Virus record (IMG/VR): IMGVR_UViG_3300026521_000003
Location: 186,001-250,000 of that record
Direction: 5' to 3' (one strand)
Length of the DNA stretch: 64,000 bases
Shown here: positions 4,335 to 61,075 of the stretch, piece after piece
Position numbering within the stretch: the first letter of the stretch is position 1
How the letters are laid out: every line of letters begins with the position of its first letter
Notes under the pieces: model-generated
Seen by the model: the letters and a program-made list of their open reading frames with translations, nothing else
What the model was told of the DNA's origin: nothing
Database searches by the model: none
Made by a program: the position numbers and the translations under genes

Positions 4335-4701
4335 TTACGGTAACTACAACACCATCTTTTACAGTAACTTTATGATTGTTTATAGAAAATGTGCCGTTTC
4401 CAATCAATTTAATTTCATCTAACTTATTTGATGGAATAATCTTATTCTGTAATTCATTTAGATCAATTCCTAGTACTCGTTCTATATAACGTAACATAGC
4501 ATGTTCACTAATTACTATATTTGATGGAGTCTTCTTTTTAAGTTTTTCTATTGCGCTTTGTAAATAGTCGATTTTTTTCTTCATAGCAGCAGATTCTTTT
4601 TGTTTCTCAGCAATTTCGATGTTTAATGTTTTTCTTTCTGCTTGAAGTTTATTTCGTCTAGTTTCAAGACCTTTCAGTTCGGCTGAATTTTTTATTGACA
4701 T
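4315..4701 (-). CDS. Coiled-coil protein with C-terminal SEHAxxRYxER domain
   Basis: N-terminal coiled coil followed by VISEHAMLRYIERV...GVVVTV. Confidence 0.65.
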   Translation of the reverse strand: MSIKNSAELKGLETRRNKLQAERKTLNIEIAEKQKESAAMKKKIDYLQSAIEKLKKKTPSNIVISEHAMLRYIERVLGIDLNELQNKIIPSNKLDEIKLIGNGTFSINNHKVTVKDGVVVTVIGDNNV

Positions 4702-5462
4702 GTTTTAACATCTCCTAATAATGATGAAATTTTTATTGGTGAAAGGCTAGTACAATGTTCTAACGATACATTAATACTATTTGAAAAAATACTATTTTTT
4801 GTATGTGTATGTCCATGTATATTGATTTCGCCCGATACATCTGTAAAAATTTCTTCTAATAAATCTGTTATCTTCCCATATTTTTTCACATCCCACTCAT
4901 TATTATTAAAAATAGGATAATGTGAAAATAATACTGTTTTGTTATCAATTTCAATAAATAAACCGTTCCAATATCTATCGATTTTTGGAGTTAGATCAAA
5001 GGTATTATTACCTATAACTATTTTTATATTTTCAATAACATCTTTCCAACCAGCTTCAATATATGTTCTTGCATTTTTTAAATCGTGATTTCCTCTTATA
5101 AGTATTTTATTACCGTTTAATCTTTTAGTTATTTCATCAATTCCTCTAAATGCAAAATCCCCAAGATGTAATACGGTGTCATTTACACCTATATTATTAT
5201 TCCATTTTTCAACTAACATTTCATCATGATAAGGTATTAAAAATTTTGCTAGTTTAGTCATACGTTCATTATTTCTTTGTTCATCGATAGGTATTGAGTT
5301 GATAAGAGATAAGAGTTCAGTACTTTCTGAAATAATATCGGTATTATAGTCTAATAGATATTCTAAACGTATAGGTTCAAATATAAGTACTCTCCAATGA
5401 CCGAAATGAGTATCGGATATAATCCAATTATCGTCATTGATTGTTGTAGATAAATCAATCAT
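4692..5462 (-). CDS. Calcineurin-like metallophosphoesterase
   Basis: Motifs SDTHFGH, HLGDF, RGNHD, SHYP and HGHTH. Confidence 0.9.
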   Translation of the reverse strand: MIDLSTTINDDNWIISDTHFGHWRVLIFEPIRLEYLLDYNTDIISESTELLSLINSIPIDEQRNNERMTKLAKFLIPYHDEMLVEKWNNNIGVNDTVLHLGDFAFRGIDEITKRLNGNKILIRGNHDLKNARTYIEAGWKDVIENIKIVIGNNTFDLTPKIDRYWNGLFIEIDNKTVLFSHYPIFNNNEWDVKKYGKITDLLEEIFTDVSGEINIHGHTHTKNSIFSNSINVSLEHCTSLSPIKISSLLGDVKTCQ

Positions 5463-10326: not shown

Positions 10327-11640
10327 TTAAAATACACTAGGTAAAATATCATATTCATCAAGATCTAGATTATCATCATCTTCATCTTCAATTATCGAAG
10401 AGCCCATAGCAGCTTGTTTGGCATACATTTCTCTTTCTAATTTTTTAGCTTCTTCAATAATTTTTAATTCTTCGGCTTTTTTTTCTTCTTCTGACTTCTC
10501 TTTCTCTAAGGCTTCAGCTGCCATTCGTTTTCTATGTTGTTCAGCAGGATCTAACTCCTCTTTATCAATATTTACTATTTTCTCTTCTGGTTTAACCAAC
10601 ATCATATTATCAACTGAGAAATCTCCCTGAGCAAAATCGGCAAAAACATTCATAAGATAATAAACTATCTGAAATGCGCACATGACTCTATCATCATGGT
10701 ATCCACTTTTACCGGAATAAGTACCATTACCAGTTCTAATAAAACCATATAATTCGTCAATAAATTTCTCATCATTGATAATTAGTTTGTTATACTCTAA
10801 TAAATTTTTAAATTGTAGTGCCAATTTACTTTTCATAGTTGGATTTAAGTGTAATCCAGCTCCTTTACCATCATAAAAAATAGGTATTTCTAAATTTTCA
10901 ATTGCCTTTTCTGTCTGTGTTAGAATTTGAGCTAATCCCTCACCGATACCATTTCTTTCAAAAATCAATAATGATTCATCAGGCAAATAGTTCCACCTTT
11001 GTTGCATAAATTGTTGTAACCATAAAATCTTTTCAAATATTAGTGATGCATCCATATCTGGATCTACAATAGATCCAACTTGAAATACTTGTTTGGGGGC
11101 TATTTCCCATAAGTGTAAAACTGATGAATCTTCGCCTCCTGCACTAGGGTCAATAGTTATAATTAGAAGAGAGTCTACATGGTCTAGTTTATCTTTATAA
11201 ATCTCAAAGCCCATAATCTCTTCAATTACACCAGGAGTTTGATAAAAATCAAGAATATCAGTTTCAATTAGTGTTTTTTCAAAAGTGAGGAATTGACAAT
11301 TATGTGATTTAATTTTATTTGAAAGTAAAAAATTATTATCTGTACTTTCAACTTCGATAATATCTATCATCTGTGATTCGGAAAAGATTTCATTGATGTT
11401 GGAGATTTCTAGAATTGTATTTTCAGTTTTTAATTTCTGTCCAACCGCTAAATTATATCCTTTAATAAGTTCATTATCATCTGTCCAAAAAATATGATTT
11501 TTACTACATTTAATATTAATATCATTTTCAAATGTTATGCTTAAATATGATTTATGTTTTGATTCAGCAAGGCCTGCAAATGATTTATAGCCCTCGGTTG
11601 TTTTAATTAAGAATCGATTATTTTTTATTAAGTTGTCCAT
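10327..11640 (-). CDS. Terminase large subunit (gp17-like), C-terminal nuclease half, preceded by a split-intein C-fragment
   Basis: Residues 1-114 are intein (KSFAG, IKCSKNH, DIIEV, SHN). Extein begins CQFL and contains IDPSAGGEDSS, FERNGIG and GYHDDRVM (RNase H-like terminase nuclease). No ATPase half in the window. Confidence 0.85.
   Translation of the reverse strand: MDNLIKNNRFLIKTTEGYKSFAGLAESKHKSYLSITFENDINIKCSKNHIFWTDDNELIKGYNLAVGQKLKTENTILEISNINEIFSESQMIDIIEVESTDNNFLLSNKIKSHNCQFLTFEKTLIETDILDFYQTPGVIEEIMGFEIYKDKLDHVDSLLIITIDPSAGGEDSSVLHLWEIAPKQVFQVGSIVDPDMDASLIFEKILWLQQFMQQRWNYLPDESLLIFERNGIGEGLAQILTQTEKAIENLEIPIFYDGKGAGLHLNPTMKSKLALQFKNLLEYNKLIINDEKFIDELYGFIRTGNGTYSGKSGYHDDRVMCAFQIVYYLMNVFADFAQGDFSVDNMMLVKPEEKIVNIDKEELDPAEQHRKRMAAEALEKEKSEEEKKAEELKIIEEAKKLEREMYAKQAAMGSSIIEDEDDDNLDLDEYDILPSVF
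11299..11640 (-). mobile_element. Atypical split intein C-fragment (AceL/GOS-TerL type), 114 aa
   Basis: Has block B (CSKNH) and blocks F/G ending HN|C, but lacks block A (N-terminal Cys). Confidence 0.85.
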
Positions 11641-15958: not shown

Positions 15959-16789
15959 TTATATACTTGGTGGAGTTTTAAGTGTAAACTCAAAACTATC
16001 TATGTAATCTATAAAATCTATGTGATCGAATTTAATATCTCCATCACCATTTAAATCTGTAACTTTTAAAGCAATGTAAGATAAAAGCTGCTGCTTTCTA
16101 TCCAAGACTTTATTATATGAAGCACCGTATTGTGTACCGTCTGAATTTCTATATGGTATTACTATATAAAGATCTGTATTTCCACCTGCATCATATTCAG
16201 ATTTTATAAATCGTTCTTCTAATTTCATCGGCTTTAAAGCTTTAAAATTAACAGTATTATTTGGTACATCAATATTAATTTCAATATCATTTAAATTGAT
16301 GGTAAAACCTTGAAAAACTACATTTTCTTTTCCAGGAATCCATTTTCTAATAAATGATTGGAATCTTAAACCTTTTGTTGCACCAAATCCTTTCCAGAAG
16401 AAAGATATTTGTCGCTCAGTTTTATATTCAGAAGTAGCAATAATTCCAGGATAAGCATTGTCCATAATTATTTCAAAATCATTAGTATTGGCGTTAAATA
16501 TTAATTTATTTAAGTTATCTAATTCATCAAGACCTTCTTTAGATGTTAAGTAACATTGAAGGGGCAAAATATCCGATGGACGAAAGTTATTAATAGGCAA
16601 TAAATTATCGTACTTCAGATCTGCATAAAGTAATCCGTCATATTCAAAATGATTTCCAGACGAACCATTAAAGTATGAAGTATATTTTTTCGTCGTTCCT
16701 AGATTAAAATAATATAAGTTTTCAAAGAAATATACTATTGGATTTGGAACTCTATCTGACCATGTTTTATTAAATTGTATTTGTTGCAT
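15959..16789 (-). CDS. Virion structural protein, module B paralogue 2
   Basis: Ends GDIKFDHIDFIDYIDSFEFTLKTP. Confidence 0.65.
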   Translation of the reverse strand: MQQIQFNKTWSDRVPNPIVYFFENLYYFNLGTTKKYTSYFNGSSGNHFEYDGLLYADLKYDNLLPINNFRPSDILPLQCYLTSKEGLDELDNLNKLIFNANTNDFEIIMDNAYPGIIATSEYKTERQISFFWKGFGATKGLRFQSFIRKWIPGKENVVFQGFTINLNDIEINIDVPNNTVNFKALKPMKLEERFIKSEYDAGGNTDLYIVIPYRNSDGTQYGASYNKVLDRKQQLLSYIALKVTDLNGDGDIKFDHIDFIDYIDSFEFTLKTPPSI

Positions 16790-24000: not shown

Positions 24001-25549
24001 TATCAGTATATACTGCTGTAGATGATAGATTTCCAGCTAAATTATCAATAGAATCATCTGGAAGAATTGCTATCCAATCTAGTAAAACTTTATCTGATTT
24101 CAAAACATTAAATGATATATCAACATAACTAGTTTCATCAATAGCTCTAACATTAACGGTACCTATTTCGGTAGGATAAAAGTATATATAACCCTCAGAT
24201 GTTGATACATCGCCATTATAAGGATTTATATCATATTTAATTTCGGACCTAACAAAATTTCCAGAAGGAGCCATTCCAATTATTGATAATGTTCCTTTTG
24301 CATTTGAAAATCGTATTTTTGCAGGTATATCTAATTGTATTACTTCTGGAGTTTCTACTATTAATTCTAAATCTTTATTAAATTTAACATGTGATATTAC
24401 CAATCTTGGTGATCTATCTATAACATTATCAACTATTTCTAATGGTTCTATATTAGATACTGCACTAGGTGTTATATATAACTCAGCTGAAAAGTTTGAT
24501 CTATCATATTCAAAACGACTTGTAAATGAAGGTAAATTATTAGTTGCATTTATAGTTAAATCTCCAATAACATTCCCTAGAGATATTTTAAATTCGGCTC
24601 CAACGTTTCCGAAAACATAATCTTTATTTTTAACGTATAAATCTTCCGGAGTTATATAAATATTACAAAATGTTACTTTTGTTGTTCCTGCAACGTTCGA
24701 TGATAAATCTAAACGATACCCCTCAATTAGTGGAGCTTTTACTTTGATCCATAATAAATTACCTTCAATATAGTAATCAAACCATTCAGTATTTAATGGT
24801 GAATCACATAAAATTTCCTCAGTAGTACCACTAATAAGAAACGGTTCATACTTAGTTGAAAGTTCATTTAATTTTATGTCGTATCCACCAGTTATAGACC
24901 TAATAGTACCAGCAAGTTGTCTGTTAAATTCATCATATGGATATAAATCATTAGCTAGTGATGATGGTAAAATACCAAGTCGCTCTCCATCAATAATCAT
25001 TACCTTTTTATAAATACTAACGACACTATTATCTGCTGCAGTAATTGTAAACTGTACATCGGTTATTGAATAATCTGATAACATATTTAAAGAAACTATA
25101 CCGCTGTTTATACTATGTGTAAAGTTTTCTGACGTATTGGTATATGATAAGGAAATGTCAAAGGGACTAGAAACCTTATCATCAGCTGTTAAATATCGAT
25201 TATAAAGATGAGACCACCTCTGCTCAACAATTTTTATATCTTGGGTATTATTAGTACTATTATAATATAGAATAATATCATCTATATCACTAAGTATTTT
25301 TCCATATACTTCTATACTGTATGAATAGTCTATAGCATCAACTTCAACTGGAATATCTAAAACTTCTCCAAGTAGTGTTTCTATATGTATTAAAGTAAAA
25401 CCTAATTGATTAGTTGTTTTAACTGTCAGTTCATCACCCGAAAGAAAATAATCTACTAAATCTTCATTATCAGCCCATATTGTATTAATAGCTACTTCAC
25501 CACCATTGGGTGAAACGATTTTAACTGTGTATGTATTATTAACAACCAT
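21041..25549 (-). CDS. Large tail fibre/baseplate-associated protein with a fibrinogen-like motif and ~26-aa repeats
   Basis: 1502 aa, beta-rich; SCYDIK...SGEFRIFP...VICEF...WT; repetitive acidic C-terminal half. Confidence 0.6.
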   Translation of the reverse strand: MVVNNTYTVKIVSPNGGEVAINTIWADNEDLVDYFLSGDELTVKTTNQLGFTLIHIETLLGEVLDIPVEVDAIDYSYSIEVYGKILSDIDDIILYYNSTNNTQDIKIVEQRWSHLYNRYLTADDKVSSPFDISLSYTNTSENFTHSINSGIVSLNMLSDYSITDVQFTITAADNSVVSIYKKVMIIDGERLGILPSSLANDLYPYDEFNRQLAGTIRSITGGYDIKLNELSTKYEPFLISGTTEEILCDSPLNTEWFDYYIEGNLLWIKVKAPLIEGYRLDLSSNVAGTTKVTFCNIYITPEDLYVKNKDYVFGNVGAEFKISLGNVIGDLTINATNNLPSFTSRFEYDRSNFSAELYITPSAVSNIEPLEIVDNVIDRSPRLVISHVKFNKDLELIVETPEVIQLDIPAKIRFSNAKGTLSIIGMAPSGNFVRSEIKYDINPYNGDVSTSEGYIYFYPTEIGTVNVRAIDETSYVDISFNVLKSDKVLLDWIAILPDDSIDNLAGNLSSTAVYTDTKLKAGDLVGNLWVEGAKYGHNRIRRIKYKVSPPDEIVGDSNAGLDWLLTLKNTTSTLRIDIRDGFILNNIGKVYDVTSYWVEDNIFETEIISDLTIDFSNAQTPLITDLNHRIAVTDIYDNSGVIIYNEGDGTETVTAKVSLEPIVYFDYIVVEEQPKIPVEKPMSCYDIKRLDPYAESGEFRIFPSVLDDTSINVICEFNKDQNGNDEIWTTIPNTSIRNLADSIGRYISDDNTILDGVINNGIRPKYYPSDDTSSESPSYLFLEFPYKIKSFSYKLRVDQPSTNSMATFKIMTDTSTVFNINGSIDNYIMNTRANTFIEYNEDIIKSDLGQIVIVPDDYTQYATTANAPLGAITPIIPTDRIVIFNTGAVTGFDAAEIFLEEIKFQSIFDPAMITTEPWEEKTSSIDIPNDFVKLSTIHKSIISNSINDIINLNEYISTNIEIPYNISKDTEEIIDINEYINLDSKFIAIISLDNIGVIELSEFINTSSDEINIISDTEDNILNINEFVSLAVEERPYMVSNTDLEVMEIALEMPNIEFERTNFIYNISLVEDNPLTIDNNYKLNIVSHENIISNIYSEIIEPISNYSLKSNIADIISTDDVLDIIDLNEFVTLYTNTTNIITQNSTNIIDLGEAINNDGNNTLNNISYIDAEVIELDTLLLFMDAYHPTVIAQVEVQIIEIDEFVNINSGRELDFTVYQDGTKALDYIDEVTVDFTSLTDIYFDTDIIEQKNRDEIVEINFTSVETIYFDTDIIEQKNRDEIVEIDFTSVETIYFDTDIIEQKNRDEIVEIDFEASAEFIGGLVVFETKENEELRIQLQKDIKIPIVHGNFKINTGRNISGSNIPSQNNLKIPRIEVNESYSYGTNKNGTNVRSQENKNISIIGQDINILSTRTRVSTTKEIKVADLNELVRVGLPTIYYPDTTIKISGTSITADEPTIESTYIELNSEASTTLELSIEKDSELEINIYEDSTEIIESVTIN
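21611..21850. repeat. Three tandem copies of a 78-bp (26-aa) unit
   Basis: Units start at 21611, 21689 and 21767, with a partial at 21845; protein unit DFTSVETIYFDTDIIEQKNRDEIVEI. Confidence 0.9.
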
Positions 25550-28500
25550 TATATTGTCTCCTCATTTAATTCAATTTCAAAAAATACTTCTGATGTATCA
25601 ATTTCTAAATAAAATAGATTTTCAGCTAAACTTTTACTATTAAACCACAATGATGCATCTATTGACTGTACAGTAAATGAATTACTAACATTGCCTGTGG
25701 AAATAATATCATTAAAATTGATTACTGTTGATCCAGGAATATCTGAAAGTAATCGGAATTCTATACTATTATTATTTACTATGCGTACTTCAACAAGTGT
25801 TGAATCATAATTATCAATTATTTCAAGAGTACCCTGTACATTTAAAATATCGACCGTATGCCAGTCTATATCAGTATTTATCAACTTATAAAGTTTATAT
25901 GACGGTAATAATAATTCATTATAATTGCAATTTATATTGATTTTTAATGATTTATGATAATCGGATATAAAAATATTTGTTGTACCTATATGATTAAAAG
26001 TTAATTCTAATTCTTGAGTTTCTTTATTAATATTAAAATCTGCTATACTATCATCATCACTCCATACCAATAAGTTGTCCCAATCATTATTATATGGGTG
26101 TAATAGTTGTATTGTTGCCTGACTTCCAATTATAACTGGAAAAAGAGTATGAGTTCTAGAAGAGTTATTGTATGGTAAATTTATATCTATATATTGTACA
26201 ACTTCAACATTAATATTTATTTCAGATTCAGAATCTGAAAAATTTATTATAGATGATCCTATATCTGTATATTGAGTATCAGTAACAAATGTAAACATTT
26301 TAGGTCTAGGCCCACCATTACGACAATCAAAATACTTATCTTCACCATTATATATACTTGCATATTTCAATCCTAAAATATTTGGATTTTCGATATTTAT
26401 ATTTAGTCCTTCTGCCTGATACTCAATTTTTAAATCTCGATAAGCAGTATTTGTGCCTTCATTATAGATAAATTCTGTTTTGGAATTCATAAATCGATAT
26501 TTGTCTATTATAAAGTTTTGTGCTTCTTGACCATTAACTGTTAGGTATTTATTAACAGTATAATATGCAGTAACTATATGTACCATAGATGGTTCAATTA
26601 ACCCATCTCTAACATTTATTTCATTGAAGTATGGATCTATGATATACATCATTCGTTCATTTAATTGTTGCTGGTATGGATTTATAACTAATTTATTTTG
26701 TGTGCAATATGTATTTATTCCTGGTTGATAACAAGGGCCTGTTGATATATCCAAAATAGCTCTATTAGAATGGCTTCTTCCATACTGTTGTAAATATGAT
26801 CTAAAACCACCAGCAGTAAGAGAAGTAGGTACAATATTATCAATATTAAATAAATCAATTTGTACTTCACCATCATCCACTATTAATTCACCTAGATTTA
26901 TCTCTTTCTCTCTATTTTCTAAACCCTTTATTCTCATATGTTTAGTGATGTATAATTTATATAAGATTTCACTTGATCCATTTACTATTTTAAATTCCTC
27001 TAAATACCATCCTTCAGTAATTTCATCAGCTGATATATTTGGCTTGATTTTTATTAATCCATTTTTATTCTCACCAGGCTCAATAGTTACAACCACTTTA
27101 TCTGAAGCTCCAATAATTGAAATTGTGTCAGCATAATAATAATTTAGAAGAGCTCCTGGTTCATCATACTCAAATGCTTTAATTACTGTATTATTATCTT
27201 TTTCAAATAAAGGGTTTGTAAAAGGAGCATTAATACTAATTGGTTCTAAAACTGAAAGAGTTGGCTCTTTAATATCTAAACTAAATGAATATGTATTTAT
27301 CCCATCAGATAAAGTTATTTCTGCTACACCTGATGTCATACCTTCTGGTAAATTTATAGTATCAAAAATTATTTTAATATTTTCTCTTTGTTCAAACTCC
27401 CCTGGAATAGGTTTACCATCAATATCTAAAACTGGAACTTCAATAATTTCTCGTTCAATTTTATAGGATAACGCACCTAATGAATCAACGATTTCTAAGT
27501 TATTTAAATCTAAGTTCATTTCTGTAATAATTATTTCTGGTTGATATGTATTATCACTATCATATACTGGAGGCAGTTTAACACAATTTTCAACATTTAC
27601 AATTATCTGTTCTCCTGTTGATGGGTTTTCAAGTAGAACTTCACAAGGATTGCCTAGTGTATCTAAATTCTCTACTAATGTCCAACCATCTGATATTAAA
27701 CCGTCTATATATGCCTGTTGTAACTCTGATGGTGATTGGGCAGGAAAAACTAAATTTTTATATTCTGCTGCAGTTATAGTGATTTTTTCACCTGTTGCAG
27801 GATTTAAAACTGTAATCATAGGGTTTGAAGAATCTATAATTTCATCTAAATTAGATAATAATGATTCTTGAGTATCGGTATTTTCCGGTAAGAAAACTGG
27901 ATCTGGATCAGTAGTACAAATAATATTTCGATCTCTTAAATAATCTTCAACATTTTGCTCAATTTTATTTAAATTTATATCATAATCAATTACTTTAGTT
28001 AAAGGGTTACGCTCTTTAGCTTCACATAAAGTTTCTATACATTGCGTGTATTCAGAACCGGAGAATTGACTACACCCATCAATTTGACATATATAATTAT
28101 TATTAACTAAAAATGAAGAAATTGTTTCTTCTTTATATTCATTGTTTAAATCTTTTGTTAATATAATTGATCTTGGATCTTTATCACATAATGATGATAG
28201 GTATTCTAAATAATCTGGATCATTAGGGTCTTTATATTCAATCAAATCAGGAAACTCACAATAAATTGAAGTTAATTGACCGGTATATGGATTCATAACT
28301 AAATGAATTCCATCTTCAGTTAAGCCATTTAAAAATAATTCCATACATGGATCATCGGGTCTAATATTTTGAGTTGCTTTAAATGGTCTAGCAGGTCGCA
28401 TACCATCAATTTCCATACTAAATGCTTTGTAGAAAACTAAAGTCTCAACTTTTGTTTGAACATCATCTTTGTTTTTAACAGCAAAAATAGATATTGAATA

Positions 28501-39002: not shown

Positions 39003-39473
39003 ATGGGAATAGAAATAGAACGAAAATTTTTAATTGATTTTAAAAAGATAGACTTGTATGATAAAAAAATAGAAATTAAGCAGGGATATATTCTGAATAG
39101 TCCTGAAAAGGTAGTACGTATTAGAGTTGCCGATAAAGATGCATTTTTAACAATTAAAGGTAAAAATGAAGGCGCTTCAAGACCAGAATTTGAGTACGAA
39201 ATACCATATGATAATGCTATCGAATTATTAAAATTTACTGATGATAGAATTATAGAAAAAACTAGATATATTTTGAAAATAAATAATGATATTTGGGAAA
39301 TTGATAAATTTCATGGCAAAAACGAAGGTCTTGTAGTCGCTGAGATAGAAATACCATCTGAGGATTATGATATAGAGTTGCCTGAATGGATACTTAAAGA
39401 AGTAACATCAGATACAAAATATTATAATAATAATCTTATAATTCATCCATATTCTACATGGGATAATGTATAA
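39003..39473 (+). CDS. CYTH-domain protein (triphosphate tunnel metalloenzyme)
   Basis: EIERKFL, QGY, VRIR, LTIKG, EFEYEI, EKTRY, WEID.F, AEIE and EVT.D..Y.N. Confidence 0.92.
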   Translation: MGIEIERKFLIDFKKIDLYDKKIEIKQGYILNSPEKVVRIRVADKDAFLTIKGKNEGASRPEFEYEIPYDNAIELLKFTDDRIIEKTRYILKINNDIWEIDKFHGKNEGLVVAEIEIPSEDYDIELPEWILKEVTSDTKYYNNNLIIHPYSTWDNV

Positions 39474-39494
39474 TGTTGATATATAGGAGAAATA

Positions 39495-39605
39495 ATGATT
39501 CTGGATGAGATTGTAAACATTGAAAAGATCGGTATTGAAAAAACTATTGATATTGAAGTGGATGGAGACCACCTATTTTATTGTAATGGTATTTTAACTC
39601 ATAAT
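39495..39605 (+). mobile_element. Split intein C-fragment, gp41-1-like (37 aa)
   Basis: MILDEIVNIEKIGIEKTIDIEVDGDHLFYCNGILTHN|S. Confidence 0.9.
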
Positions 39606-40100
39606 TCAGCAGCAGGTGATGTTGCTGATGTCTCAGAAGAAAATATCCAAGGGGGTATTTCTAAAATTCAAGCAGCCGATAATGTTATTGGTTTTATACC
39701 AAATGCACAATCAAGAGAAATGGGTATAATGCGAGCTAAATTCTTAAAAACAAGAGATAGTAGTGGTGTTGGTAGTACTGTTGATTTTAAAGTCGATTGG
39801 AGTACCTTAACATTTGAACCTTGGGATACAACTGGAGAGAATAATCCATCAGTTTTGAATTATGCAGCACAAGCGCAAAATGCAGCACAATCATTAAATG
39901 CAGATCAACCCTTGCAAAAAACTACAAAAGGTAAGAAAAAACCATCTGCTAGTGATTTAAAAGGTAATTCGGGTGCAGTAGTAAAATCGGATGATGAAGA
40001 TGATGATTCTAGCACATCGGGTAAAAAAACCAAAGGTATTATTAAGGGACTTGGTGGTAAAAAGAAAAAAGGACTTAACAGAGAAGTTAAGATGTTATAA
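39495..40100 (+). CDS. gp41-type replicative helicase C-terminal fragment preceded by a split-intein C-fragment
   Basis: 37-aa IntC ending THN, then S+1 and the helicase tail IQGGISKIQAADNVI...FLKTR.S.GVG. Own TATAAT (39469-39474) and AGGAG SD. Confidence 0.85.
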   Translation: MILDEIVNIEKIGIEKTIDIEVDGDHLFYCNGILTHNSAAGDVADVSEENIQGGISKIQAADNVIGFIPNAQSREMGIMRAKFLKTRDSSGVGSTVDFKVDWSTLTFEPWDTTGENNPSVLNYAAQAQNAAQSLNADQPLQKTTKGKKKPSASDLKGNSGAVVKSDDEDDDSSTSGKKTKGIIKGLGGKKKKGLNREVKML

Positions 40101-40102
40101 AA

Positions 40103-40480
40103 ATGCGAATAATATTCTATAATTATTTTGTACCTTACAGAAATTTACTTAAAAAAAATAATATTGAGCGATTTAATACTTTTAAAGAATTTCATAATAA
40201 TTGGATAAGGGATGAAGAATGTATTATAATACTCCCTGTGCAAGTATTTGATTTAGTTGGATTAGATATTCGATTCATATTACGAAATTATGGAAGAGAT
40301 GATTCTAAGAGATTTTTATTTATTGGTGATAGAAAACAAATTGAATTTGCATTAAGTCAGAATGATAAATTTTTACAAAATATTATAGATGAGGTACATT
40401 TACCAATATTATCTAATACTCTAGAAGTAACAATATTAGAAAAAATTAAATTATTGGAAAAAAAAGGTAAGAAGGTTTAA
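40103..40480 (+). CDS. Hypothetical protein
   Basis: ORF in the operon. Confidence 0.6.
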   Translation: MRIIFYNYFVPYRNLLKKNNIERFNTFKEFHNNWIRDEECIIILPVQVFDLVGLDIRFILRNYGRDDSKRFLFIGDRKQIEFALSQNDKFLQNIIDEVHLPILSNTLEVTILEKIKLLEKKGKKV

Positions 40481-40481
40481 G

Positions 40482-41645
40482 ATGTATGGTGCAAATACAA
40501 TAGTTAGAGTTTATATTGGGCCTAATGATAAATACACTTATGAACATTTGAGAAAATTTTATCATTTAGCCAAAAGACGTTGGAAAGTTGCTGATGTATG
40601 GGGAGCCGATGAAGTTATGGTTTTAGAAAATAATAGACGACATGCAAATAAATATCAGCGCTCTCTTTCTATTTTAGGTTGGATTACATCTAATAAAAAA
40701 TATTTAAAAATTGAGAAGTATTATCAGGGCTTAGTAGGTGATCCATACTATGAATATTTTGCTAAATTCTCTAAATATGTTTTGACTTGGTGGGGCTTAG
40801 GTTCTAGATTCGTAAAAAAATCATCAAAAAAAGATAGAAATATAAAATCGATACCTAATACACCAATGTTCGACCCATCAATTCATTTTGATAAGAATTC
40901 CATTATGGAAAAAATCTATATGCAGGGTATGAGTTATGATGATGCTATGAAAACCACCTTTAAAGGTAAAGCTCAACTTGCAGATATTATTAATGGTTTA
41001 ACAGATTATAATAAAAAAATTGGTATGTCTGATGAAGAAGCTTATGCTGATGCATTAAGAGTTTCGGAGATTGTGAGTAGAAACTTGGCATTAGATAAAA
41101 ATGCTCCTATGGATAATCAGTATTCGTTTTTAATAAATTATTATAATAAATTCATTGATACAACTAGACGAATTATGATGCCCTTAGATATGAATTTATT
41201 TTTTATTAAAGAAGCTCTAAAATACAATCCTAATCTTTCATTATATGTTTTAAGTCCTGACAATAATATGCATAGAATCCAGGGTATTGTTGGGGAACGT
41301 TGTGAAAATATAATGATTGCTATTTCAGCTTTTAAAGATACAAAAAAATATGATTATGAGTTTGTTTATTCGTATGGGTCTCACACCTTATTTAATCATG
41401 CTGAAAATGGTTTTATTAAAGCTAAAGATTTAAAAAAGCTCACTACAAAAACCAATAATCTTATGTATGGTTCCAAAAAATGTAAGATTGAACATAGATA
41501 TGATTCAGAATATATGTTTGACCTTATTTTAGAAGGAACACCCGCGGGAAATTATTTTCCTTGGGTCGATGCATTTCATAATGTTCAGTTATCCCCAGAT
41601 TATTCAAAAATAATAAATCTTGAAGGGAAAGATATTATAGTATAA
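40482..41645 (+). CDS. Hypothetical protein (387 aa)
   Basis: Long ORF with AAGG SD; no recognised motif. Confidence 0.7.
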   Translation: MYGANTIVRVYIGPNDKYTYEHLRKFYHLAKRRWKVADVWGADEVMVLENNRRHANKYQRSLSILGWITSNKKYLKIEKYYQGLVGDPYYEYFAKFSKYVLTWWGLGSRFVKKSSKKDRNIKSIPNTPMFDPSIHFDKNSIMEKIYMQGMSYDDAMKTTFKGKAQLADIINGLTDYNKKIGMSDEEAYADALRVSEIVSRNLALDKNAPMDNQYSFLINYYNKFIDTTRRIMMPLDMNLFFIKEALKYNPNLSLYVLSPDNNMHRIQGIVGERCENIMIAISAFKDTKKYDYEFVYSYGSHTLFNHAENGFIKAKDLKKLTTKTNNLMYGSKKCKIEHRYDSEYMFDLILEGTPAGNYFPWVDAFHNVQLSPDYSKIINLEGKDIIV

Positions 41646-58998: not shown

Positions 58999-59637
58999 AT
59001 GTTTAAATGGGATAATTCAAAAGATTATGATGCAAATGTATTTGATTATATAGTCTATTCTGATCCAGAGAAATTGGTACAAACTTTTTATAAAGATTTA
59101 TCTCTAAGAGTTGAGTTTGAAACATCGGATCCAAATAGACATATGCCAATGGTTATTAGTACTAATTCAATAATTGAAACTTTATTGCAAGAATTTCATG
59201 ATGTTTTCACAGAACAAGAATTAATAAAGATGGTTAAATTATTATTTAAATTAGATTATGAAGATAAGTATTTTATTATCCGTACTTTAAATAGAAATTT
59301 TTTGCATAATGAACTAACTATTGATAATTATATGCTTTGTCGTATTATTGAAAAAGTAACACCTAGTAAAAATATATTTACATCTGATATTGTTGATTTG
59401 ATGCATAGGAGTAAGCAATTTATTATACCTTATTTAACAGCATTTAAATATCGATTGTCCAATCATGATAAACATTTTCTTTATACTGAATTTACTGAAG
59501 ATTTTTCTGGTATGTTTGATAAAAAAATAACATACTGGATTATGGATAATATTGATGGTATTAGTAAAATGGTTATAGATTCTGGAGAAGAACTCATTTA
59601 TATACCAAAAGAAGTTAGAGAAATTTTTATTTTTTAA
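58999..59637 (+). CDS. DIFIF-tag family protein
   Basis: Ends SGEELIYIPKEVREIFIF*. Confidence 0.75.
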   Translation: MFKWDNSKDYDANVFDYIVYSDPEKLVQTFYKDLSLRVEFETSDPNRHMPMVISTNSIIETLLQEFHDVFTEQELIKMVKLLFKLDYEDKYFIIRTLNRNFLHNELTIDNYMLCRIIEKVTPSKNIFTSDIVDLMHRSKQFIIPYLTAFKYRLSNHDKHFLYTEFTEDFSGMFDKKITYWIMDNIDGISKMVIDSGEELIYIPKEVREIFIF

Positions 59638-59685
59638 GAGAAATTAAGGATATATTTAATATAATTAAAAATAAGAGGAATTAAA

Positions 59686-60393
59686 ATGAGAACGGAAATA
59701 GAAATACTTGCAGAAATTGAATCAGGTAAGATTACAATAACTGATGCATTAGAAGAAGTTCATGAAACCGGTGCATACTTACTAATACAAAAAATTGCTA
59801 ATATGGAATTGACTAAATCCGAAAGATTATTATTAATATCTCTTATACCACAAGTAGATGATGTCTTGAGTCTTAAAAATTTCTTTTTAACTTTAAAAAG
59901 TCATGATGAAATAAAATTATTTTTAGAAGAATGTAATAAATCAAATATTAGTACAAGTATATATTATGCTCTTATGATACGGAATGATATAGATAAAAAA
60001 ATCTACTTTCGTCCTATAATTGATGCCCTTGCGGGAAGAAGCCAAGAATTTGTGGGGTTGATAAAGAAACTGATAAAAAAAATAGATAATATTTTATTAT
60101 CTGATATTGAATATCTTTATAAAAATGCTGCAAGAAGGGATTTTGCTAATATTATCAACGAACATATATCAATTTTTTCAGAGGATATCATCAAGTACAT
60201 TTTTGGAATTGTAAAGGATATGGAAGATAAAAATCCTCCAGTTTCAAGACTATTACTTCATGCTTTAGATGTTCAAATTATGGACAATCCAAGAAAATAT
60301 AGTTTTGAAGATGAATTTAAAATGTATATGTATGAATTTACTGGAAATGATGAATACTTGCCAGACGATATAAAAACGATTTTTATATATTAA
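59686..60393 (+). CDS. DIFIF-tag family protein
   Basis: Ends MYEFTGNDEYLPDDIKTIFIY*; TTAAG-N11-TATAAT upstream. Confidence 0.75.
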   Translation: MRTEIEILAEIESGKITITDALEEVHETGAYLLIQKIANMELTKSERLLLISLIPQVDDVLSLKNFFLTLKSHDEIKLFLEECNKSNISTSIYYALMIRNDIDKKIYFRPIIDALAGRSQEFVGLIKKLIKKIDNILLSDIEYLYKNAARRDFANIINEHISIFSEDIIKYIFGIVKDMEDKNPPVSRLLLHALDVQIMDNPRKYSFEDEFKMYMYEFTGNDEYLPDDIKTIFIY

Positions 60394-60403
60394 AGGGGGT
60401 TTA

Positions 60404-61075
60404 GTGTTATCTAATAATAAAATTAAATTTTATAATGAAAACATACGTAAACCCCTAGAACTTCTTGGTTTTAACTCTATTCCAAGAGGTGAAACTTACA
60501 ATGAATTTTCTAAAGGTCGTAATTATAAATATAATGCGTTGATGCATATTTCTGTTCAAGTAGATTTTGAAAAATTATTATTTAAATATCGTCTTAGCTT
60601 TCCGTGGTATAGTAATTTTTCAACTATTCCAATTGCATATAAAATACTACTTTTACCTAAAAGAGAAATAGTTGTAGAATTATCAAAAGAGAATTATCAA
60701 CAAGAATTAGAAAATATTTTTTCCGAAATTGTGGACCAATTAGAAAAAAATAAAAAAGAATTTGATATTATGATTCGAGAAAAATTAAATGAAGTAGATG
60801 AAAATAGTATAGCTAAATTATTTACACCTATCAATACACCAATACTACTAAATTATTTAGATTTAGAATATACAGATTATATCAAAATTATTTTTAGTTT
60901 AAGAAAAAGATTAAAGAATTATACTGAAAAAATAACTATTCTTTTTATGCATAACATGTCTAAAAAGGGATTGAGACTTTCAACTTCTGATTTAGAATTA
61001 TTAGAAACTATTGAGTATAATAGTTCTATAAAATTTTCTCAACTTGAGGAACTTAAATCTATTTTTATATATTAA
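60404..61075 (+). CDS. DIFIF-tag family protein (degenerate tag)
   Basis: Ends QLEELKSIFIY*. Confidence 0.7.
   Translation: MLSNNKIKFYNENIRKPLELLGFNSIPRGETYNEFSKGRNYKYNALMHISVQVDFEKLLFKYRLSFPWYSNFSTIPIAYKILLLPKREIVVELSKENYQQELENIFSEIVDQLEKNKKEFDIMIREKLNEVDENSIAKLFTPINTPILLNYLDLEYTDYIKIIFSLRKRLKNYTEKITILFMHNMSKKGLRLSTSDLELLETIEYNSSIKFSQLEELKSIFIY

Follow-up and report, generated by a model that had tools for sequence, protein, structure and literature searches.

A split-intein C-terminal half of a DnaB-like replicative helicase in a hydrothermal-vent jumbo phage, probably completed in trans by a distant partner

The window considered here is a 64,000-nucleotide stretch of an IMG/VR virus record (IMGVR_UViG_3300026521_000003, here called G000), a linear sequence of 289,880 bp with 27% G+C, of which the window represents bases 186,001–250,000. 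On its plus strand, at window positions 39495–40100, lies an open reading frame (ORF) of 201 amino acids (aa) that encodes the C-terminal fragment of a split intein (IntC), the C-extein core of a replicative helicase and a tail; only the last third of the helicase is there. Walker A, Walker B and the N-terminal domain are absent, as expected for a C-half, and the product therefore cannot act as a helicase alone. We consider it probable that the gene is functional and provides the C-terminal half of a replicative DnaB-like helicase, completed by trans-splicing with a distant partner encoded in DNA that G000 does not cover. The phage that carries it is a hydrothermal-vent jumbo phage, one member of a clade.

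The IntC occupies the first 37 codons of the ORF (39495–39605, plus strand). It contains intein blocks F and G and ends ...HLFYCNGILTHN; in the ORF it reads ...IDIEVDGDHLFYCNGILTHN and then Ser38, with block G providing the penultimate H36, the terminal N37 and the +1 nucleophile S38. The NCBIfam intein C-terminal model TIGR01443 is matched at 25.9 bits (cut-off 15.6), and of all PDB sequences the gp41-1 intein 6QAZ matches best (E 9.5e-6), with 21 of the 37 residues identical in an alignment that runs end to end (query 1–37 against chain 92–128). The computed net charge of the IntC is −6. The open frame begins 5 codons ahead of the Met, and neither an N-terminal intein fragment (IntN) nor an N-extein is found in frame.

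Directly behind the IntC begins the last RecA-like part of a DnaB-like helicase (39606–39827, plus strand), recognized by tblastn and by a profile, which runs from the +1 Ser via GGISKIQAADNV to KFLKTRDSSGVG and DWSTLTFEPW. The profile comprises five jumbo-phage DnaB-like helicases (PA5oct, Vibrio phage 2.275.O, Atu_ph07, XaC1 and Phosso), and ORF residues 37–165 align to its positions 340–459 with an E value of 8.8e-22. In PA5oct helicase numbering the C-extein corresponds to residues 342–463 and starts directly behind the SQLNR motif; its identity to DnaB-like helicases of the PA5oct, Atu_ph07 and Vibrio 2.275.O type is 38–48%, phrog_239 (DNA primase/helicase) is matched at 6e-9, and the helicase motifs that follow H3, i.e. 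the H4 loop GGISK..ADN and the K.R..G arginine-finger region, are in register with the family. An earlier reading of this DNA, made from its letters without database searches (the sequence-only reading), had described a 37-aa IntC of the gp41-1 class on the C-part of a replicative helicase, and these matches bear that description out. The same reading had named the host protein gp41, which was mistaken; the extein is that of a PA5oct/Atu_ph07-type DnaB-like helicase, not of T4/cyanophage gp41. Among the 17 records in the phage GenBank collection that match the C-extein there is no T4-like phage, and no record there contains the IntC, all 17 matches beginning at query residue 37 or later.

The remainder of the ORF, residues 112–201 (39828–40097, plus strand), is a low-complexity Lys/Gly/Ser/Asp tail, as had been noticed from the letters, with 16 K, 10 G, 9 S and 7 D in 90 aa. 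The tail is variable except for a conserved end, KGLGGKKK..N..VKL, in which K199 and L200 are nearly invariant among 31 homologues; its ratio of non-synonymous to synonymous change (dN/dS) is 0.05 against a close relative and 0.4–0.7 against distant ones. We infer that the tail probably serves to bind a partner in the replisome.

What would a matching N-half look like? When a profile of the helicase N-part was run against 1.84 billion cluster representatives, at least 12 metagenomic N-halves were obtained (P0256, P0268, P0324, P0361, P0408 and others), each 364–438 aa long and ending ...SQLNR/C (a slash marks a splice junction) with an IntN of 88–95 aa. Cis-splicing versions of the helicase carry an intein at this same SQLNR point. 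A scan of IMG/VR with an alignment of the junction plus IntN returned 52 loci with SQLNR/C, of which 3 are cis-splicing, 47 are split and 2 are cut by a contig end. In every informative split locus (47/47), the C-half lies downstream on the same strand at a distance of 56–2,500 bp (median 1,302 bp). Four of the intervening ORFs were examined: the one at locus L196 is a homing endonuclease (phrog_3339, DUF7487), another falls into a PHROG with no assigned function, and the other two lack a Pfam match. The IntCs of these adjacent-type loci share 23–26 of 37 residues with the window IntC among the best 25 ranked, as compared to 21 of 37 for gp41-1, and the C-halves listed from such loci are 39–55% identical to the window C-half. 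The family thus provides the N-half with an IntN of about 90 aa that the sequence-only reading had proposed to look for, in metagenomes; in G000 and its relatives, as described below, such an N-half is not found.

The charges of the two intein fragments are complementary in sign, with net values of +4 to +8 for the four family IntNs that were computed versus −6 for the window IntC. A docking prediction for the window IntC with the IntN of IMG/VR locus L166 scored 0.80, and the best of three controls scored 0.04; of the solved complexes 51 out of 78 attain the mark applied to such predictions, as do 2 out of 108 mismatched pairs. The docked interface comprises IntC residues 1–38 and a single domain is predicted; across three runs the contacts agree to at least 88%, and the predicted local distance difference test value (pLDDT) of the partner is at least 67. 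In silico, then, the window IntC is predicted to assemble with a family IntN into an intein fold. Two points count against giving this prediction full weight: the IntN used is a heterologous one and not the cognate one, and a gp41-1 structure is present in the PDB, such that the docking score may reflect likeness to that structure and not binding by this copy.

The search for the other half yields points against a helicase made in trans. In the whole of G000, no N-half is detected by phrog_239, by Pfam DnaB_C (PF03796) or by AAA_25 (PF13481). The C-half is all that is returned by tblastn with five full cultured-phage helicases and by the five-helicase profile with the --max setting, for which the next ORF (E 0.064) is a small NTPase. 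A tblastn search of G000 with 13 genuine N-halves and 5 full helicases yields only intein-level matches to other inteins, and regular-expression scans for IntN blocks A and B find only the IntNs of DNA polymerase B and of a topoisomerase. In other words, no helicase N-half lies in the 225 kb upstream of the C-half or in the 64 kb that follow it. The sequence-only reading had stated that the window holds no recognizable N-half, and this holds for the complete 289,880-bp record as well; it had also placed any partner more than 23 kb away, and here the idea of distance survives, whereas the figure was an understatement, given 225 kb up, 64 kb down and a further 34 kb in a relative.

That relative is contig Ga0256837_1000041, with proteins 91–95% identical to those of G000 and a C-half of 95% identity. 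The contig runs collinear with the record as far as G000 base 289,874 and then continues for 33.9 kb, a continuation that contains a fractured UvsX/RecA, an RNase H and the exonuclease piece of a DNA polymerase B, and no helicase N-half. Likewise, about 14 kb past the equivalent of the G000 left end in a second (P0011-type) relative contain no N-half, and the 306-kb relative G001 (IMGVR_UViG_3300035665_000001), which was read whole and is itself incomplete, has the C-half only. No N-half is seen in the flanks of the C-half in further relatives either, which cover 10 kb on each side in L013, L025, L027 and L031 and shorter distances in L030 and L032. When the N-part profile was used in a word-indexed protein search, only contiguous helicases were obtained, and the same holds for another IMG/VR scan, distinct from that with the junction-plus-IntN alignment; the cluster-member listing contains no N-half linked to the large contigs that carry C-halves, and IMG/VR gave no match to an AT-biased DNA pattern for TASQLNRC. 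That two large assemblies of different relatives should both lack the N-half is an uncomfortable coincidence, and it must also be held against our reading that the joining of the two helicase halves is something we infer from sequence.

These negative results have to be seen in light of how much of the genome has been sampled. CheckV estimates the completeness of G000 at 87%, and both of its ends break off within repeat-bearing ORFs. In IMG/VR the only relatives with this C-half are G001 and G002, which are apparently one virus, and G001 is without equivalents of G000 1–45 kb and 159–180 kb and has 57 kb that G000 does not. The label of orphan that the sequence-only reading gave to the C-half is therefore unproven, because the genome record is incomplete: G000 is a fragment. 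We regard it as most likely that the N-half resides in a part of the genome covered neither by G000 nor by the contigs of its relatives.

One could instead suppose a true orphan, a phage that has lost the N-half and retains the C-half as a remnant or in a re-purposed form (a free C-terminal domain or tail binding to replication partners would be one example); this would account for the absence of an N-half from the roughly 324 kb that G000 and its near relative together provide and from the 306-kb relative. The conservation of the gene speaks against such a fate. The C-half is matched by 61 database proteins, and approximately 25 full-length homologues that were aligned have the same length, the same start and the same HN/S junction. 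In all of 17 homologues compared, residues D4, E5, I6, D19, G24, D25, F28 and the catalytic H36, N37 and S38 show no variation, and there is no reason for an intein fragment to stay conserved if it has no partner. Compared with the 95%-identical relative, the C-half has 47 synonymous and 10 non-synonymous differences (dN/dS 0.043), and the IntC alone has 12 and 4 (dN/dS 0.044). Judged by these substitutions, the C-half gene is under strong purifying selection, and that the IntC itself is so constrained argues against a relic. Additionally, the fragment is without Walker A and B, and G000 encodes a primase, a DNA polymerase B and a clamp loader and no other DnaB-type helicase; both large records are, as noted, incomplete. 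We therefore hold a true orphan to be quite unlikely.

A different way to explain the missing partner is that the N-half is present in the sampled DNA and escapes recognition, being very divergent, further fractured or equipped with an atypical IntN. There is some precedent for this in G000 itself: the models TIGR01445 and PF14890 both missed the IntN of its topoisomerase, which was found only through the extein, and the 33–41-aa IntNs of its terminase are flagged by no model. A hidden N-half would nonetheless need a Walker A/B core, which in this family is as conserved as the C-part that is detected at 1e-22. The Walker-A frames of G000 were all listed (clamp loader, SbcC-like, UvrD-like, MoxR-like, ClpA-like, two small NTPases, a kinase and the terminase), and none is DnaB-like with an intein end; nor did the 13 N-halves and 5 full helicases give more than intein-level matches. 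An unrecognized N-half in the sampled DNA is accordingly improbable in our view.

Several candidates for the N-half were considered and rejected. A second phrog_239 match in G000 is a ClpA-like AAA+ protein; weak AAA_25/Walker-A matches at G000 187,986 and 146,370 are small NTPases of 180–192 aa; and weak helicase matches at G000 169.6 kb and 199.3 kb are repeat-rich structural ORFs. Matches to PF14890 at G000 252,242–253,075 and 254,695–255,168 are false positives in ORFs that end ...IFVF. The topoisomerase IntN is not a shared partner for the helicase, as its extein is GyrB-like and fits its own C-part at the EGD/SA junction. Among standard inteins, G000 contains three IntCs (helicase, DNA polymerase B and topoisomerase II) versus two IntNs (DNA polymerase B and topoisomerase II), which leaves the helicase IntC as the only unpaired one.

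The helicase is not the only gene of this phage that is in pieces. The N-part of topoisomerase II, found via its extein, is encoded on the plus strand at G000 176,790–178,418 (L158) and ends ...SEGD/C with a 95-aa IntN, and the C-part, recognized by an extein match, is encoded on the minus strand at G000 59,247–60,476 (L159) and reads IntC/SAIASF...PLKGKVLNV. The two halves of this GyrB-like protein, which is split at the EGD/SA Toprim motif, are thus 116 kb apart on opposite strands, and the top PDB match of the IntN is gp41-1, making this another split intein of the gp41-1 class. DNA polymerase B is distributed over at least three genes: a middle piece (G000 4,449–5,249, plus strand, L047) that ends ...DTD/S with a 118-aa IntN starting with Ser, a piece that begins IntC/SCYF (G000 25,461–26,630, plus strand, L161), and an exonuclease piece, seen in the relative (Ga0256837_1000041 107,002–108,765), that does not end in an intein. 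The IntN and IntC halves are 20 kb apart in G000. The polymerase intein is cysteine-less (Ser1, Ser+1) and in this may resemble the Aes123 PolB1 split intein, which is mentioned in PMC11923092.

The large terminase is made of three pieces with two atypically split inteins. Its N piece (G000 275,182–275,799, plus strand, locus L160) ends in a 33-aa IntN (CVDGETKIT...), and its middle piece (G000 279,367–280,167, plus strand, also L160) begins with a long IntC (...LISHN/CDEMAFIP) and ends in a 41-aa IntN (CLDEETKVD...); the PHROG terminase match is contiguous across these two pieces, with profile positions 434–522 and 522–637. The C piece lies within the window (10327–11640, minus strand), about 78 kb from the others and on the opposite strand; its translation starts with an IntC of about 113 aa (...KIKSHN/C), it matches the terminase family phrog_24361, and it is 60% identical to a G001 ORF that bears a TIGR01443 match. 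Distant halves of split genes are, in short, the norm in G000. The sequence-only reading had proposed a second essential protein built in trans; trans assembly fits what we find, and "second" falls short, as topoisomerase II, DNA polymerase B and the terminase (with two inteins) are split too. Just past the equivalent of the G000 right end, the relative Ga0256837_1000041 has a fractured UvsX/RecA at 82,142–85,196 (also L049 18,775–21,532, and L051), in which an N-part with IntN and an IntC with C-part enclose a gene on the opposite strand for a 415-aa DUF7487 endonuclease; further split genes are therefore to be expected in the part of the genome that is missing from G000.

The relative G001 has further intein-bearing genes (63,427–66,624; 106,990–110,465; 241,513–244,611). 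A portal-like ORF of 1,066 aa in that genome has two contiguous inteins, two split inteins break its ribonucleotide reductase up into three neighbouring genes, and one cis and one split intein interrupt a gene of the UvsX type.

Several metagenomes from hydrothermal vents and epibionts contain DNA of the clade in abundance. One public run has a 49,912-bp contig that spans the C-half stretch with zero differences, and it may come from the source sample; in a metatranscriptome library there are short contigs identical to 39471–39646, which is weak evidence of transcription because such a library may hold DNA. Other contigs of public vent and epibiont runs match only window positions 39543–39686, i.e. 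the conserved end of the IntC and the start of the extein, with 16–19 differences, and diverged copies of the C-half therefore co-occur in those samples. The source of G000 is a metagenome assembly, and a normal helicase gene broken by misassembly or misannotation could in principle give the same picture. The same ORF, with its IntC Met start behind a CYTH gene, appears however in independent assemblies from several studies, in which the genes come in the same order, i.e. the CYTH gene (sometimes separated from the C-half by one ORF), the C-half and two ORFs of about 125 and 387 aa, and the 49,912-bp contig, although possibly from the source sample, reads the stretch identically. An artefact is scarcely credible.

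The only match to the C-half in the genome collection is a 2.7-kb contig (L038, QMNM01000334.1) with a C-half homologue, which was binned into a Guaymas 'Candidatus Cloacimonadota' metagenome-assembled genome (MAG). It is probably a phage contig binned by composition, and as a hint to the host it is weak at best; the only helicase match in that MAG is its own ordinary bacterial DnaB. One may also ask whether the partner might be encoded outside the phage genome, by a host, a satellite or a co-infecting phage, in which case the helicase would be completed only in the right cell and phage replication would be conditional on a second genome. The negative searches for an N-half and the abundance of the clade in several vent and epibiont metagenomes are compatible with this scenario. 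It is without precedent, however; the MAG with the C-half contig offers nothing beyond the ordinary DnaB, and the other split genes for which both parts have been seen have both in the phage genome. We judge an outside partner to be very unlikely. A less far-reaching and likelier reading is that in the vent jumbo-phage clade no fewer than five essential genes have had their halves scattered: those for the helicase, for topoisomerase II, for DNA polymerase B and, counted twice, for the terminase, to which UvsX or ribonucleotide reductase would be added in relatives. If so, the replication and packaging machines of these phages would be assembled post-translationally from at least 10 dispersed gene pieces.

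How does this arrangement compare to known systems? The gp41-1 split intein resides in a gp41 of the T4/cyanophage type, with more than 85% similarity to that of P-SSM2; the insertion point of the alleles gp41-1 to gp41-7 is at position 356 of P-SSM2 gp41, with Ser at +1 to +3, and the gp41-1 IntC is negatively and its IntN positively charged (Dassa et al. 2009, PMC2677866). The window intein resembles it in having an IntC of likewise 37 aa with 21 identities, in the +1 Ser, in a host that is a phage replicative helicase and in the same polarity of a negative IntC with positive family IntNs. The two differ in the extein, which here is that of a PA5oct-type DnaB-like helicase and not of T4/cyanophage gp41, and in the −1 residue, which is Tyr in gp41-1 and Arg (of SQLNR) in the helicase family of the window; given this different −1 residue, identity of the intein allele is not shown. 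They differ as well in that the gp41-1 halves flank a homing-endonuclease gene in a single locus, whereas the partner of the window C-half is not within 64–225 kb. The window intein would appear to work like gp41-1 but is not shown to be that allele. The earlier description of a gp41-1-like intein accordingly stands for the class (21/37) and not for the allele, with the −1 Arg instead of Tyr and with the adjacent-type IntCs closer at 23–26 of 37.

The closest relatives in kind are the adjacent-type fractured DnaB-like loci, which have the same helicase family and the same insertion point (SQLNR/C... to HN followed by S, C or T). Those loci keep their halves neighbouring, whereas in the relatives of the window clade that were checked there is no N-half within 10 kb. 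The comparison of 47 adjacent loci out of 47 with no neighbouring N-half here leads us to propose that the window clade uncoupled the halves, and a separation far beyond that of described fractured loci, as the sequence-only reading had supposed, is upheld by the 56–2,500 bp that separate the halves in all 47. In the layout described for fractured genes, which the 47 loci share, the N-part, a free-standing homing endonuclease and the C-part occupy one locus, and in the gene-breaking model 'step IV' denotes uncoupled halves, for which cyanobacterial dnaE is the example (PMC2677866). The likeness to the cyanobacterial DnaE split intein is that of an essential replication protein trans-spliced from two distant genes; the differences are a cellular genome, another protein and another intein family. 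The genes dnaE-n and dnaE-c stand at separate loci. Terminase inteins of the AceL-TerL/GOS-TerL type are atypically split. The large terminase of G000 resembles these with its short IntNs (33–41 aa) and long IntCs (about 113 aa); the likeness concerns the terminase, as opposed to the helicase intein with its standard split site (about 90 + 37 aa).

We hypothesize the following route to a complete helicase. The C-half product would be translated separately as IntC (37 aa), Ser, helicase motif H4, arginine-finger region and C-terminal tail, and the partner N-half would contribute the N-terminal domain, Walker A and B and ...SQLNR, followed by a positively charged IntN of about 90 aa. The IntC would pair electrostatically with the IntN, and the fragments would assemble into a HINT fold; trans-splicing would then join ...SQLNR to SAAGDV..., free the intein and yield a complete helicase of about 500 aa. 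The ancestral order of N-half, homing endonuclease and C-half would have become uncoupled in this clade, as in 'step IV' of gene breaking according to Dassa et al. 2009. What is new here is that uncoupled helicase halves are conserved across a vent jumbo-phage clade, in a fractured family whose halves are normally adjacent. The last step of gene breaking, i.e. loss of the endonuclease and genomic uncoupling, would thereby be documented in a phage lineage.

There are also practical aspects. The locus adds a diverged natural member to the gp41-1 class, whose split inteins rank with the fastest that are known and find wide use in protein ligation. Additionally, the helicase, topoisomerase, polymerase and terminase inteins of this one genome represent a set that must be mutually orthogonal in one cell. 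More speculatively, if the halves belong to differently timed transcription units, trans-splicing could gate replisome assembly.

The immediate surroundings of the C-half gene say something about its expression. A Shine-Dalgarno sequence, AGGAG, is read at 39485–39489 (plus strand), 5 nt ahead of the ATG; it is a good match, and the gene therefore has its own, as the sequence-only reading had it. That reading had also credited the gene with its own TATAAT promoter, a claim that does not hold up well. The hexamer (39469–39474, plus strand) runs into the CYTH stop codon, with which it overlaps, and has no −35 partner listed, and the number of promoter-like sites in the region (55) is not in excess of that in shuffles (48.1 +/- 8.1). 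At 27% G+C, with neither an excess nor a −35 element, the TATAAT is not evidence of a promoter, and it is probably not a dedicated one. No terminator-like site was found in the region. The C-half gene sits 21 nt behind the CYTH gene inside a long co-directional gene array, which, together with the lack of promoter excess, makes co-transcription at least as likely as a promoter of its own.

The neighbours are as they had been described from the letters, a CYTH protein and hypothetical genes. The upstream one (39003–39473, plus strand) is a CYTH-domain protein by Pfam (PF01928 at 2e-13), which is next to or near the C-half in relatives too. Downstream, over 40103–41645 on the plus strand, are two ORFs of 125 aa (40103–40480) and 387 aa (40482–41645) that have no match to a Pfam or PHROG family. 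No endonuclease gene adjoins the C-half, its neighbours being the CYTH protein and these ORFs without family matches. The 387-aa ORF was considered as a degenerate Hint domain or N-half and rejected, having no Walker A and no family match. By synteny, the two ORFs follow the C-half in L025, L027, L028, L029, L026, L041, L042 and G001, and this linkage hints at a function shared with the helicase.

Finally, the two ORFs behind the false-positive PF14890 matches belong to a multi-copy ORF family with a shared C-terminal motif, ..E/D-I/V-K/Q-D/E-I/M-F-V/I/L-F (slashes here separate alternative residues). Members are found at G000 24,469–25,425, 252,242–253,075, 254,695–255,168, 260,381–261,385 and 262,054–263,260, and at 16,671–17,990 of the relative contig L049.

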